Shown: piece after piece, positions 2,672-46,348 of the stretch | Layout: each line of letters opens with the position of its first letter | Position numbering within the stretch: the first letter of the stretch is position 1 | Sequence record: NC_019929.1 | Direction: 5' to 3' (one strand) | Length of the DNA stretch: 64,000 nt | Made by a program: the position numbers and the translations under genes | Notes under the pieces: generated by a model | Told to the model about the DNA's origin: nothing | Database searches by the model: none | The model's input: only the letters and a program-made list of their open reading frames with translations

Positions 2672-3109
2672 ATGGAAAAACGACTGCACACTTTCGATTA
2701 CAACGGACGTGAGCAGTTGTTTGTAGACGGTGAGCTGTGGGAAGACCACGGTCTCACCCTGCAACAACTGTGGAAGTTAAAGTTACTGTCAAGTCGACAC
2801 GGCGGGTTAGAGTTCGTCTTTACCGACCAACCTATTCCTGAGCAAGTGTGGACTGACCAACGTGACTTGCTGTTCTGGGAGGTTCGTGAGTCGTTCCTGA
2901 AGAAGGTGTTGTACACGCATAGTTGGCGTGGAGGATGCCATAGTCCAGCGAATGTATTGAAACTCTCTGAACGGTACGGCACCGAGATGGCGTACATCCA
3001 GACATGGCCGAAGGAACTGGATGAAAACAGTTTGGTGGTCTGGTGGTCAGCCCCGCAAGGTAGCGATCGGGCTACCGTCCGAATCGTGTTCGAACACGAC
3101 TACAAATAA
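2672..3109 (+). CDS. hypothetical protein
   Basis: 145-aa ORF abutting the upstream stop, followed by a terminator. Confidence 0.8.
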   Translation: MEKRLHTFDYNGREQLFVDGELWEDHGLTLQQLWKLKLLSSRHGGLEFVFTDQPIPEQVWTDQRDLLFWEVRESFLKKVLYTHSWRGGCHSPANVLKLSERYGTEMAYIQTWPKELDENSLVVWWSAPQGSDRATVRIVFEHDYK

Positions 3110-41240: not shown

Positions 41241-42156
41241 TCCTTATTACGAGATCGTGATCGGGGGGAGGGGAGGAATTATTTTTTACAAGACTTCCCA
41301 GTAGTGTGACAAGTTGACCCCGATGGCATTACGGGAAAGCCACTCTCGACCGAGGATGAGTCTCAGTGTAGCGTGTGTGCGAAATGGGAGTGGCGCTTTT
41401 TCAACGAACGAATCTTACAGGCTGGTAGGATGGAAGGGGAAACCTAGCGACCCTCAGAGTCGCAAACTGCTGTGTGTTGGCTCCGCCCCTGGGGTAAAAC
41501 CTCGGGGCGATTTTTTTTTCTCCCGAAATCGAATTACGAGTTTGTTTAGTTATATGCGAATAGTTTCCTCGAACGTCACTGCTTGGGGATAGCTGATTTT
41601 CTGCGGATGCAGAGCTCCACCCTGGTCTTCACCAGCCAGGGTGCTTTTTCGAGAATTCCTATCGTGGGAGCCCTCGAAAAAGCAAATCGCTCAGCCTAAC
41701 ACTGTTGGTTTGTTTAGTATGTTCGGCAAAAAGTGTTTCGCGACACTTCGAACGGGTGGTTCCGAGCGGGGAAACTTTGAACCACCCACCCATTCAGGTA
41801 TCGGCTTTTTGCAATCGGCCTTTGGTCGTGATGCATGACGCTTTCACCGTCACACATGTGCCGGTACCGTGGCAGCTCCAGATGCGGGACTTCGAGTATA
41901 CGCCGTTGAACTTACCTCCGGTAGTCCTCGTCGTTCCCGCCCTGGGGTGCGGCCAATCCGAATTCGGCGTTGCGTCGATAGGGGTCTGCGTGTAGAACCG
42001 CAGGCTTGGGGTTACTCCCGAAGGAGAGTGGTCCATATCTTGGCGGCTCGGGAAGACGAGAGGGGTGGATGTCCTCGTTGGGAAACGACGATGTCTGGCT
42101 GAATAAAATTTACAGGTTAGCCGTTGGGTATGTTAAACAACCCACGGAGAACTGCA

Positions 42157-42666
42157 ATGACCACAATCGCTTACGACGGGAAAACCCTCGCGGGTGATTC
42201 CCAAACGACACAAGGCGACATCCGCCTGTCGATGCACGCTGTGAAAATCTTCACCCCCCAACCAGGTGAGTCCTGGGCGGTGAACGGGGAGAAAGCGGTT
42301 TCGTTTGGTGTGGCTGGATGTCTTCAAGGCAACAACGCACTGCGTGAAGCGCTGAACAGTTGCATGAAGGGCTACCAGGGTCTGACCGGAAGCACACGAT
42401 TCCCAAAAGGGATTGTGATTAGTTATCTGGTTGTGACCGAGCATGGTAACGTCTACGCCGGTGGTCAATACGAGAACGACGAGATGCCTTGGCTGACCAA
42501 AGTCGCTGCACCCATTGCGGTGGGTAGCGGGGCAGAGTTCGCCATTGGTGCGATGGCCGCAGGCGCATCCGCTGGTGACGCAGTTAGTATTGCGGCACGG
42601 TTCGATGTAAACACTGGTGGCGAGATTCGGGAGATTAGCCATGAAGCTCTTTCACGTCACGCGTGA
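42157..42666 (+). CDS. HslV/proteasome-beta-like Ntn peptidase
   Basis: ATG42157 after GGAG gives M-TTIAYDG..LAGDS (N-terminal Thr); GSG..FAIGAM...A..AV.IA..FDVNTGG C-terminal motif. Confidence 0.75.
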   Translation: MTTIAYDGKTLAGDSQTTQGDIRLSMHAVKIFTPQPGESWAVNGEKAVSFGVAGCLQGNNALREALNSCMKGYQGLTGSTRFPKGIVISYLVVTEHGNVYAGGQYENDEMPWLTKVAAPIAVGSGAEFAIGAMAAGASAGDAVSIAARFDVNTGGEIREISHEALSRHA

Positions 42667-43569: not shown

Positions 43570-43737
43570 ATGAAAGCCAAACTTCGTAATTTTGCGTTGC
43601 TGGTTTTCCTGGTGTTGGCCGTATTGTTCTACCTGGCTAAGAATTTTGTGATGCTCGCCGTTGACGTCGCAATAATTCTGATGGTCTTGTGGGTGCTACG
43701 GTCACTCGCTAAACGGGCTTTCCGTCGGAAGGCTTAG
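43570..43737 (+). CDS. 55-aa two-TM membrane protein
   Basis: Hand-translated MKAKLRNFALLVFLVLAVLFYLAKNFVMLAVDVAIILMVLWVLRSLAKRAFRRKA; basic ends, hydrophobic core; not in the ORF track. Confidence 0.65.
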   Translation: MKAKLRNFALLVFLVLAVLFYLAKNFVMLAVDVAIILMVLWVLRSLAKRAFRRKA

Positions 43738-43800: not shown

Positions 43801-44631
43801 ATGAAAAAGCTTTTGGTAGGTTTGTTGGCAATCCTGGCGTTCTCCGCTCACGCTACTGATGTTACCATTACGACGGGCCAGCAAGGTCTGACGTACAACG
43901 CCACGTACGGCGTGAATCTTGCCAGTGCTCTGAATGAGTTCGGCAACAAGTCCACTGTGGTACCGTCGAAAGGTTCCCTGGACAACCTGGACAAAGTTGC
44001 TGCCGGTTCTGCGCAGATTGGTTTTACCCAGGCAGACGCTTTCCAGTTCTGGCGCTCACAGCATCCGAACGAAGCACAGAACGTAGACATCGTTGGCCAG
44101 CTGGGTGACGAGTGTGTCTTCGTGGCTGTCAAGAAAGAAGGTAAGGTTGGCGGTGAAGCCGATCTGAAAGAAGGCATTAAGATTGCGGTCGGTGAACCCG
44201 ACTCTGGTTCTTACGCCAGTTGGCAATACCTGCAAGGTTTGGTGAAGCAATACGCAAAAGCTGAAACCTACGCGAAAGGCGGTATCCGTTCTCTGTCCAA
44301 AGTGGCCACGGGTGAATACGACGCGTTCATGTGGGTAAGCGCACCGGGCAAGAATAACAAATTCCTCGAAGCAGTTAACCAGGATAGCTCTGGTCTGAAA
44401 CTCATCGACATGAACAACTGGAACGTCAACGATAAACTGCCTAACGGGCAAGCAGTCTACGAGAAGAAGTCTGCTAAAGTTGATAACTCTGCGTGGTTCG
44501 GTGGTGATGTGAAAGTGCCGTGCACCAAAACGTTGGTGGTTGCTAATACCGACGCCGGTGACGAACTGCTGGAAGCCGTTTCTACTATCCTCCTCAAGAA
44601 TGCTCCACGCATCATGGGGACGGGTAAGTAA
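43801..44631 (+). CDS. TAXI-family-like periplasmic solute-binding protein
   Basis: Sec signal peptide (MKK...AFSAHA), SKGSLDNLDKVAAGSAQIGFTQAD and IAVGEPDSGS motifs. Confidence 0.75.
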   Translation: MKKLLVGLLAILAFSAHATDVTITTGQQGLTYNATYGVNLASALNEFGNKSTVVPSKGSLDNLDKVAAGSAQIGFTQADAFQFWRSQHPNEAQNVDIVGQLGDECVFVAVKKEGKVGGEADLKEGIKIAVGEPDSGSYASWQYLQGLVKQYAKAETYAKGGIRSLSKVATGEYDAFMWVSAPGKNNKFLEAVNQDSSGLKLIDMNNWNVNDKLPNGQAVYEKKSAKVDNSAWFGGDVKVPCTKTLVVANTDAGDELLEAVSTILLKNAPRIMGTGK

Positions 44632-44649
44632 GTGCTGACGTGTAAAGGG

Positions 44650-45215
44650 CACTGGCTGGGCTGATAACCCCGCCGGGACGGTTTCATCTGAGGGGTTGGG
44701 TGAAGTGAAGAAACGTGGCACACCAATAAGTCCACGTTAACCGGATTGCATAAAGCACTACCTGCGGGTAGGCAATCCTGCCGTCTAACATTATTCGGTG
44801 ATTAAACATGGAAGAGTTGTTCAGAGCGTTTCTGTACCGAATGGGTACCTGGTTGAAAGACCTCAAGCTCTGGAAGCTCGATTGCTATTGGTTATCAGGA
44901 TGTGGGACTGAACGCCATAAACCTGTTTTAGGACGAGAGTCCTCAACCCAGGCGAAGTCCGTTACGGACGAAGGTCAAGCACCGGCCCATTAAGCCGACT
45001 CGCTGACATAGGCAACCTTCACCCCACAATCTGAATGTAACTGATGGGATTGAGTTCCCAGTGTGAAAGAGTAGCAGTGTGCTACTGAGTTCCTCCCTGG
45101 GACTGCTGAGCAGCGAGGGAATAGGGCCAAGAAGAAAGTAAGTAGGGTTGGTGCTTGGAGGCGCTAAGACCGGGGGATACCCTGGCTCAGAAGAAGAAGT
45201 CCATCAACCTCACTT
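44650..45215 (+). ncRNA. Candidate large structured non-coding RNA
   Basis: ~560-nt gap with no convincing gene; nested long-range pairings and many hairpins (see findings). Confidence 0.45.
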
Positions 45216-45218
45216 AAT

Positions 45219-45294
45219 GCGAGTATAGCTCAGCTGGTAGAGCTTCTGGTTCCCAACCAGACGGTCGTGAGTTCGAATCTCATTGCTCGCTCCA
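45219..45294 (+). tRNA. trnG: tRNA-Gly (CCC)
   Basis: GCGAGTA/TGCTCGC acceptor, TCTGG-TTCCCAA-CCAGA arm, CCA. Confidence 0.95.
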
Positions 45295-45403
45295 ACAAAA
45301 TCAATGACTTATAGCGATTTCCCCATTTCGCTACAAGACAACCTAAGTATATGTAAAACAACCAAGACGTGTGCGAATTCGAAGTTGAGTTCTCAGACGT
45401 ATT

Positions 45404-45570: not shown

Positions 45571-45575
45571 AACAA

Positions 45576-45722
45576 TGACACTGACCCTCGCCGCCATTGA
45601 GCAGCTTAGAGGTCTGGCAGCCAATAAAGGCATCCGTAAGTAACCGTAGCCTTCGGGCGTAGATGGTGAAAGCCGCCAAGTGCAGCCTTAGAACTCCGTG
45701 GGATTCGGAGGAGTGTCACCCA
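45576..45722 (+). ncRNA. 147-nt tRNA-shaped RNA with extended anticodon-position arm
   Basis: TGACACT/AGTGTCA terminal stem plus C-CCA end; T-like arm CTCCG-TGGGATT-CGGAG; 64-nt arm closed by TGGCAGC/GCCGCCA. Confidence 0.6.
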
Positions 45723-45726
45723 TTTT

Positions 45727-46151: not shown

Positions 46152-46157
46152 AACAAT

Positions 46158-46277
46158 AGTCGCCTAGCTCAAGATTAGAGCACACCTTACGACCAATACT
46201 GACCAACACGCACCGCGGTGCAATAATGGCGGTGGCGTGATGTGCGGTTACCGGTTCAAGTCCGGTGGTGACTTCCC
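46158..46277 (+). ncRNA. tRNA-like RNA with 62-nt anticodon arm (no anticodon loop)
   Basis: Canonical acceptor AGTCGCC/GGTGACT, D arm GCTC/GAGC and T arm ACCGG-TTCAAGT-CCGGT; anticodon arm expanded (46183..46244); ends TCCC. Confidence 0.7.
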
Positions 46278-46283
46278 TATAAT

Positions 46284-46348
46284 GGCTACTCCCGGTCGGT
46301 CTGGGGTCGTCTGTAAAGACGAGGATGGTTCAAATCCGTCAGTGGCAA
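46284..46348 (+). ncRNA. Compact degenerate tRNA-Tyr-like element
   Basis: GCTACT/AGTGGC stem, CCCGG/CTGGG arm, TCGTC-TGTAAA-GACGA arm, GATGG-TTCAAAT-CCGTC T arm; 1-nt variable region, no CCA. Confidence 0.45.

Follow-up and report, generated by a model that had tools for sequence, protein, structure and literature searches.

Comparative analysis points to a large folded RNA with an embedded small gene that heads the tRNA cluster in SPN3US-like giant phages

What kind of element occupies the ~565 nucleotides (nt) that separate a putative solute-binding protein gene from the tRNA cluster of Erwinia phage phiEaH2? We analyzed a 64,000-nt stretch of sequence record NC_019929.1 (hereafter the window, numbered from its first letter), in which this interval is flanked on its 5′ side by a TAXI/NMT1_3-type gene (43801-44631) and on its 3′ side by a tRNA-Gly(ccc) gene at position 45219, all on the + strand. 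The source phage is phiEaH2, and window positions 44630-45218 are 100% identical to JX316028 168630-169218. The tRNA-Gly(ccc) gene is the first of 10 clustered tRNAs, and the interval, which we refer to as the module, ends 8 nt upstream of it and thus heads the cluster. An initial annotation had placed here a large structured non-coding RNA of ~560 nt in an enterobacterial jumbo phage. Covarying helices bear out the large structured RNA in this position, and no RNA family in Rfam matches it. The non-coding part of the proposal is not upheld, because a conserved open reading frame (ORF) lies inside the structure.

The module is conserved as a unit across a group of giant phages. Searches with blastn detect the region in 52-54 phage records, at one place in each, and the carriers are SPN3US-like jumbo phages of Erwinia, Salmonella, Escherichia and Proteus that belong to the genera Erskinevirus, Wellingtonvirus, Machinavirus and Seoulvirus. 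In nhmmer alignments, query positions ~20 to 586 are collinear in every lineage and genus, and the boundaries first proposed (44650-45215) match those of the conserved module almost exactly. On the upstream side, most Erwinia phages in the group have the TAXI gene, which Seoulvirus lacks; SPN3US has gp2 together with a strong hairpin, and ChrisDB has other small genes. On the downstream side, the module is followed directly by a tRNA, by a ParB-like gene, or by ~200 nt of additional non-coding DNA. Because the flanking genes differ while the module stays collinear, we consider it to be self-contained. In all genera it is located upstream of tRNAs and is always carried on the tRNA strand.

We built covariance models for the 3′ hairpin (R1) and the 5′ domain (R2) of the module, and both identify a single copy per genome. 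Across 238 of the 243 kilobases (kb) of phiEaH2, searches with R1 and R2 revealed no additional copy, and the syntenic HslV locus in phage EL gave no match. A metagenome pattern scan returned 54 loci, only seven of which are genuine, and these are all near-identical to the known genera. The eight matches from a scan of bacterial genomes are all due to chance and include no relatives of the module, and blastn comparisons with E. coli genomes and plasmids revealed no similarity. Wider relatives were also sought in viral contigs with three DNA patterns and with protein-pattern scans, and none were gained by either route. Among everything searched, the module is by these criteria specific to SPN3US-like giant phages.

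The decisive evidence for folding is comparative and comes from a set of 22 non-redundant homologs whose pairwise DNA identity reaches down to ~50%. Single-sequence folding compared with shuffled sequences yields z-scores of −3.1 for the + strand and −2.9 for the − strand, values that are so alike that they cannot tell the strands apart and are uninformative. The homologs contain many G-U pairs, with single positions showing, for instance, GU:17 or UG:13. These would be A-C mismatches on the opposite strand, and therefore the RNA is assigned to the + strand. The module contains at least 12 conserved helices along with many invariant unpaired nucleotides, and on this comparative evidence we judge the large folded RNA to be real.

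For the 5′ domain (44650-44790; ~145 nt), the structure derived from RNAalifold and the covariance model has standard pairs in 97.6% of 545 pair cells. The value falls to 74.9% for shuffled data and to 36-44% if partners are slid, and changes on both sides are observed in 19 of the 26 pairs. Hairpin H1 changes on both sides in six of its nine pairs around an invariant GGG/CCC core. H3 has 99.3% of its cells paired and changes on both sides in six of seven pairs, and the two-tier hairpin H4 is paired in 100% of cells, with such changes in seven of ten pairs. All of the complementary segments listed in the initial annotation are present in the sequence at the positions given there, and several of them prove to be conserved helices. 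AACGTGG/CCACGTT (44713-18/44732-37) exhibits compensatory changes with up to six pair types per position, and compensatory changes are likewise found for GGATTGC/GCAATCC with its inner CTACC/GGTAG. Little or no variation is seen in the unpaired AGAC, in the ACC..UAAGYC segment of the H3 loop or in the internal loop ACAYAAAGCAC of H4.

The helix GACGG/CCGTC that closes the junction is supported by a single covarying pair and is not predicted by RNAalifold. Its ACGG/CCGT portion is replaced by CCGG/CCGG in Seoulvirus and by GCGG/CCGT in Machina. The variable hairpin within the junction is absent from the alignments for SPN3US-type Seoulvirus and the Caitlin/ChrisDB group. The loop of H1 can form a pseudoknot with the linker that follows the junction. 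As counted by our own script, 20-22 of the 22 sequences pair at each of the four pseudoknot positions, and two of these positions switch from A-U to G-C in different clades. The exceptions are one A-C mismatch in homolog L014 and several that all derive from homolog L004, in which the linker is misaligned. Only one nucleotide separates the end of the pseudoknot at 44795 from a Shine-Dalgarno-like sequence beginning at 44797, which places the pseudoknot 12 nt before the AUG. Purine-rich motifs equivalent to GGUGA are present in all clades. A complementarity between AAGCACC and GGUGCUU was considered as a switch and rejected, as Kwan and Wellington have changed one side only.

The 3′ RNA domain spans ~300 nt and begins inside the second half of the ORF. 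There, the hairpins GGAC-GAGA-GTCC and GTCCG-TTA-CGGAC of the initial annotation are retained at equivalent places with a different sequence in each clade, often with GNRA loops. Next comes a three-tier hairpin that carries the stop codon in its loop. Its outer pair varies among the homologs (AU:9, GC:8, GU:5), as does its inner pair (GC:19, AU:3), and the remainder is invariant. The UGGGA/UCCCA hairpin is paired in all 22 sequences, with G-U variants only and no compensatory change, which speaks neither for nor against this helix. AGUAGC/GCUACU, which had been proposed as AGTAGCA/TGCTACT, displays compensatory changes, with both sides altered in four of six pairs.

The long hairpin at the 3′ terminus is the most conserved segment of the module. 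Its between-clade identity is 76-87%, whereas the TAXI and HslV genes reach 71% and 50%, respectively. Standard pairs fill 95.6% of its cells, compared with 83.8% after shuffling and ~45% when partners are slid, and 9 of its 23 pairs exhibit compensatory changes. Conserved internal loops (GGAGRCGCUAAGACC and CAGAAGAAGAAGUCC) interrupt the stem. In Kwan (L005 1768-1841) and Wellington (L022 1877-1950) the interior of this hairpin is unrelated, and a 10-base-pair (bp) closing stem, GGAGGGGATG/CATCCCCTC, is kept that is itself of unrelated sequence. This replacement lowers the R1 score from ~100 to 49 bits. A candidate pairing resembling P4 of RNase P (GAAGUCCAUC/GAUGGGAUU) was dropped, since its CAUC lies within the terminal stem and the adjacent pairs covary.

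The variable cassette between these 3′ hairpins occurs in at least three unrelated versions that are distributed against phylogeny, which suggests recombination within the module. phiEaH2 carries the Wellington version, and its sister Asesino and the Machinavirus pSal-SNUABM-04 carry the SPN3US version.

The conserved fold differs from the global architecture initially proposed, in which paired ends enclosed a long nested helix. That arrangement is not conserved across the homologs. The end helix CCCCG/CGGGG pairs in 47% of cells, and CTGGGC/GCTCAG reaches 79% because both of its sides barely vary, with no compensatory change. The segments assigned to these end helices instead occupy local hairpins with covarying stems. 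Similarly, the long-range helix GGGTGAAG/CTTCACCC is paired in 37% of cells, and both Seoulvirus and the Caitlin group carry a deletion of its 5′ arm. Values for GTACC/GGTAC (46%) and CCTGGTTGA/TCAACCCAGG (∼51-55%) are likewise low.

The module was originally described as containing no credible gene, but its small ORF is, on comparative grounds, a real gene under purifying selection. None of the 22 homologs has a stop codon in this frame, compared with one to seven per sequence in each of the five alternative frames. The homologs share a common UAA position, have corresponding starts, and contain gaps in multiples of three, and all have an AUG preceded by a purine-rich motif. Lengths range from 55 to 64 amino acids (aa), except that two homologs begin at a more upstream AUG and reach 69 aa. 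The encoded proteins carry the motif R.W.[LF]...W[LF][ST]G.G..R, plus a C-terminal AP... The profile of family phrog_26199 matches the proteins of Machina (1e-49), Caitlin (1.4e-8), SPN3US (7.6e-5) and phiEaH2 (0.025), and these four align over their full length. The gene is annotated in some records (for example, as Asesino gp9 and Machina gp9) and is unannotated in phiEaH2, SPN3US and many relatives, and genome annotation is therefore corrected here.

Selection acts differently on the two parts of this ORF. Nei-Gojobori estimates among related phages give synonymous divergence (dS) values of 0.3-1.8 for the first ~38 codons, with ratios of nonsynonymous to synonymous divergence (dN/dS) mostly of 0.1-0.35. 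For the last ~24 codons, dS is 0.05-0.29 and dN/dS is mostly 0.6-1.4. Thus, the constraint acts on the protein in the N-terminal half and on the nucleotides in the C-terminal half. The low dS and the conserved hairpins in the 3′ half further indicate that RNA structure overlaps the coding sequence. Protein-level conservation might have offered an explanation for the entire region; it is indeed found, yet it explains only the N-terminal ∼110 nt.

The small protein has few relatives. Only three matches were found among 5.8 billion proteins, and a profile search of 1.84 billion representatives yielded only four small relatives. There was no significant match in Pfam, PADLOC or the sequences of the PDB. 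AlphaFold2 predicts a helix for residues 2-29 (predicted local distance difference test score ~80) and disorder for residues 37-61. The predicted helix is amphipathic, and the protein carries several Arg, Lys and Asp residues. Residues 20-36 (window 44865-44915) also match NCBIfam NF050041, a model for precursors of ribosomally synthesized and post-translationally modified peptides (RiPPs) associated with radical S-adenosylmethionine (SAM) enzymes, with an E-value of 0.026 and 14.5 bits versus a cutoff of 50. This sub-threshold match is seen in phiEaH2 only, and phiEaH2 encodes two radical-SAM proteins ∼100 kb away (record 62552-64793). A link between the small ORF and radical-SAM RiPP precursors is probably due to chance.

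Table 1. Positions of the module and its component features in the 64,000-nt window
Feature	Position	Strand	Description
Whole module	44650-45216	+	~565 nt; conserved, single-copy
H1 hairpin	44652-44676	+	9-bp stem 44652-60/44668-76; conserved 7-nt loop YUGRURW
Pseudoknot	44663-44666/44792-44795	+	H1 loop with linker, 4 bp
Closing helix GACGG/CCGTC	44677-81/44781-85	+	encloses multi-helix junction; read from alignments
Variable hairpin in junction	44682-44708	+	contains the GGGTGAAG arm of the initial annotation
H3 hairpin	44713-44737	+	6-7 bp; conserved loop GCA.ACC..UAAGYC; preceded by invariant AGAC
H4 two-tier hairpin	44743-49/44772-78 and 44758-62/44767-71	+	internal loop ACAYAAAGCAC near-invariant
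Shine-Dalgarno-like GGUGA	44797-44801	+	6 nt before AUG; read from sequence
Small ORF	44808-44993	+	61 aa; family phrog_26199
Hairpins within ORF 3′ half	44895-44969	+	include GGAC/GTCC 44931-42 and GTCCG/CGGAC 44957-69
Three-tier stop-codon hairpin	44973-75/45015-17, 44978-80/45002-04, 44983-85/44995-97	+	UAA 44991-93 in loop
UGGGA/UCCCA hairpin	45045-45060	+	near-invariant; preceded by invariant ACAAU
AGUAGC/GCUACU hairpin	45070-45086	+	conserved loop with GUGU
Variable hairpin cassette	45087-45135	+	at least three unrelated versions distributed against phylogeny
3′ terminal long hairpin	45144-45211	+	closing stem 45144-56/45197-211; apical hairpin 45167-75/45180-87

The module corresponds to no RNA family that we searched. 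We used Rfam 15 with cmscan to examine positions 44400-45400 at the gathering score and at E ≤ 10, and to examine four homologs at E ≤ 1. The phiEaH2 region gave only a tRNA and a chance microRNA match even at the relaxed threshold, and the homologs gave tRNAs only. No models matched for GOLLD, ROOL, OLE, RNase P, transfer-messenger RNA (tmRNA), group I or II introns, 6S RNA, signal recognition particle RNA, known self-cleaving ribozymes or riboswitches. ARAGORN detected no tmRNA in the window, and no split host gene surrounds the module as would be the case for an intron. The literature we searched holds no account of this RNA. We regard the module as a new family of RNA, best read as a structured mRNA with a leader, a small ORF and a trailer, or as a dual-function RNA.

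Several known systems nevertheless bear some likeness to it. ROOL and GOLLD RNAs are several hundred nucleotides long, reside in phages and prophages typically beside tRNA genes, and adopt ornate multi-helix folds. The module is similar in size, phage origin, tRNA adjacency and multi-helix fold. However, it is restricted to jumbo phages of Enterobacterales, carries a conserved ORF in its middle, and gives no evidence of closing end-pairing or of multimer-forming loops. The resemblance to tmRNA lies in a pseudoknot ~12 nt before the first codon, a stop codon in a hairpin, and structure after the ORF. Unlike tmRNA, the module has no tRNA-like domain or conserved end pairing, and its ORF of 55-64 codons has an AUG and a Shine-Dalgarno sequence, with protein-level selection on the N-terminal half.

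RNAIII/hld of S. aureus and SgrS/SgrT of E. coli combine a small translated ORF with a larger RNA whose structure is conserved beyond coding needs, as the module may do, and RNAIII, at ~500 nt, is similar in size to the module. By contrast, the module is phage-encoded and linked to a tRNA cluster, has no sequence relationship to either RNA, and yielded no base-pairing targets. In the T4 gene 32 leader and in the E. coli rpsO/S15 and alpha-operon/S4 leaders, a pseudoknot at or near the ribosome-binding site is bound by the encoded protein, which sets translation. The pseudoknot geometry beside the ribosome-binding site is similar in the module, but the 5′ domain is much larger (~145 nt with a multi-helix junction), and the 300-nt 3′ domain has no counterpart in these operators. 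Finally, the stable RNAs C and D of the T4 tRNA cluster are non-coding RNAs of ~120-140 nt that are co-oriented with the tRNAs and released by tRNA-processing enzymes. The module shares their location and orientation within a phage tRNA cluster, although it is far longer and is coding, a comparison made by description only.

How might such an RNA function? With moderate confidence, we favor a reading in which the module would be one transcript that serves as a structured mRNA, with a 5′ domain that acts in cis, a 3′ domain that protects the end, and perhaps an RNA function as well. In the 5′ domain, H1 is followed by the junction closed by GACGG/CCGTC, and the H1 loop forms a pseudoknot with the linker ahead of the ribosome-binding site. 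This pseudoknotted domain might be bound by a protein or a small ligand, or stabilize the 5′ end, or both, and in so doing set the use of the adjacent start codon. The first ∼35 codons of the ORF specify a conserved, predicted amphipathic helix and a W...WLSG.G..R motif, and the resulting small protein would be the controlled product and a candidate partner of the RNA that encodes it. The 3′ domain might define and protect the 3′ end once RNase P or RNase E removes the tRNA precursor, and would probably also bind a factor.

The tRNAs of phage PhiKZ depend on the non-virion RNA polymerase (PMC12571901). By analogy, transcripts from the tRNA region of SPN3US-like phages might be made by a non-virion RNA polymerase, away from ribosomes. 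If so, the RNA could fold fully before translation, which fits the presence of structure inside a coding region.

A number of observations weigh against the structured-mRNA reading. RNAalifold reveals no conserved pairing that masks the Shine-Dalgarno sequence or the AUG, and therefore an on/off switch is not evident. The pseudoknot comprises just 4 bp that were counted by our own script. No signals for a sigma-70-type promoter or a terminator were found, with the scan performing at chance level; SPN3US-like phages use promoters other than those of the sigma-70 type. In addition, protection of the 3′ end alone would not need ~220 nt of conserved structure with invariant loops. The replacement of the 3′-hairpin interior in Kwan and Wellington also means that this interior is not indispensable.

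Some of the same features might instead reflect a large RNA or ribonucleoprotein that acts in trans, with folded domains that serve as a scaffold, decoy or catalyst for tRNA maturation, for ribosomes or for some other process. The ORF would then encode a peptide cofactor or a second, independent function, as in tmRNA, RNAIII and SgrS. The many conserved helices and invariant unpaired nucleotides are consistent with such a role, as are a 3′ hairpin more conserved than protein genes, the tmRNA-like layout, the unvarying location, on the same strand as the tRNAs and heading their cluster, and the tiny size of a protein with an arginine-bearing helix. However, neither a target nor complementarity was found, nothing similar is present in E. 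coli genomes or plasmids, the ~110 nt that separate the domains evolve like ordinary coding sequence, and the conserved interior of the 3′ hairpin has been lost in Wellingtonvirus. We regard a trans-acting function as possible but doubtful. A particular form of it is a new class of ribonucleoprotein RNA in which two domains (~145 and ~300 nt) are joined by a segment that encodes their own helical partner, and which acts on the tRNA or translation apparatus or on RNA traffic; this we consider unlikely.

As a specific form of the cis-acting model, the 5′ domain could also be a new type of riboswitch that senses a ligand and thereby controls ORF translation. A junction with a pseudoknot and invariant AGAC, ACAYAAAGCAC and ACC..UAAGYC elements that abuts a Shine-Dalgarno sequence is what such an aptamer might look like, but no known riboswitch model matches, there is no conserved alternative pairing to serve as an expression platform, and the downstream gene codes for a 60-aa protein with no metabolic link. 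A riboswitch is thus a rather improbable interpretation. The small ORF within a long structured mRNA and the structured 5′ untranslated region of ∼150 nt are reminiscent of type I toxin-antitoxin loci, in which a hok-style mRNA for a toxic peptide is inactivated by its fold until processed. This likeness does not extend to the peptide, a charged amphipathic helix with a disordered tail and no hydrophobic transmembrane helix, or to 5′-3′ fold-back pairing, which is not conserved. PADLOC gave no match, and a scan of the minus strand for sigma-70 promoters gave nothing meaningful. We consider a toxin mRNA very unlikely. The purely non-coding RNA of the GOLLD/ROOL type put forward initially, with paired ends and a chance ORF, has in its favor a real structure and a similar size, phage origin and tRNA adjacency. 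We consider it refuted and thus highly unlikely, given that no covariance model for these families matches even at E ≤ 10, that the ORF is open and under purifying selection in all homologs, and that the end-pairing and long-range helices are not conserved. Least credible is an ordinary small protein gene whose flanking structure is due to chance or shared ancestry. The modest minimum free energy z-score, similar on both strands, would be compatible with this explanation, but it is contradicted by compensatory changes in 19 of 26 and 9 of 23 pairs, by cells that are 96-98% paired versus ~40-45% when slid, and by a between-clade identity of the 3′ hairpin above that of neighboring genes; chance structure, too, is therefore unlikely.

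Well-supported large structured RNAs of unassigned role are rare, and none has been described for SPN3US-like jumbo phages in the literature searched. Comparative support for the module is unusually clean, and three features are combined in it: a pseudoknotted junction domain beside a start codon, a gene half that doubles as RNA structure, and a 3′ hairpin whose conservation exceeds that of the neighboring protein genes. These features are testable in phage-host pairs such as SPN3US/Salmonella and Lh1B/E. coli. Given its position at the head of a tRNA cluster in phages that are thought to separate transcription from translation, the module may act at the RNA level to control processing, stability or export.

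The surroundings of the module offer several minor observations. In Seoulvirus, the ~200 nt of non-coding DNA between the module and the next tRNA (L003 2726-2920 in SPN3US) are conserved within the genus. Immediately beyond, SPN3US has two adjacent tRNA-like Rfam matches on the + strand, with scores of 37.1 and 30.6 bits (L003 2921-3064; record 2929-3072). The record lists there one ‘tRNA-OTHER’ and a minus-strand coding sequence, SPN3US_0003, that overlaps both tRNA-like matches and is probably spurious. In the phiEaH2 tRNA cluster, three gaps of 110-200 nt (45295-45403, 45571-45726 and 46152-46348) have no Rfam match at E ≤ 1. The Asesino record places a 121-nt ‘tRNA-Ile(aat)’ between tRNA-Ser and tRNA-Met, an interval that matches the gap at 46152-46348.

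Upstream of the module, the HslV-family peptidase gene (42124-42666) is conserved across the whole group. It has counterparts with 35% identity in Pseudomonas EL-like jumbo phages, where the module is absent at that locus. The neighboring TAXI/NMT1_3-type gene encodes a periplasmic solute-binding-like protein (Pfam 9.6e-12) with an N-terminus resembling a signal peptide. Between tRNA-Cys and this gene lies an ORF (43570-43737) for a strongly hydrophobic protein of 55 aa, listed as hypothetical in the phiEaH2 annotation, which may be a small membrane protein.

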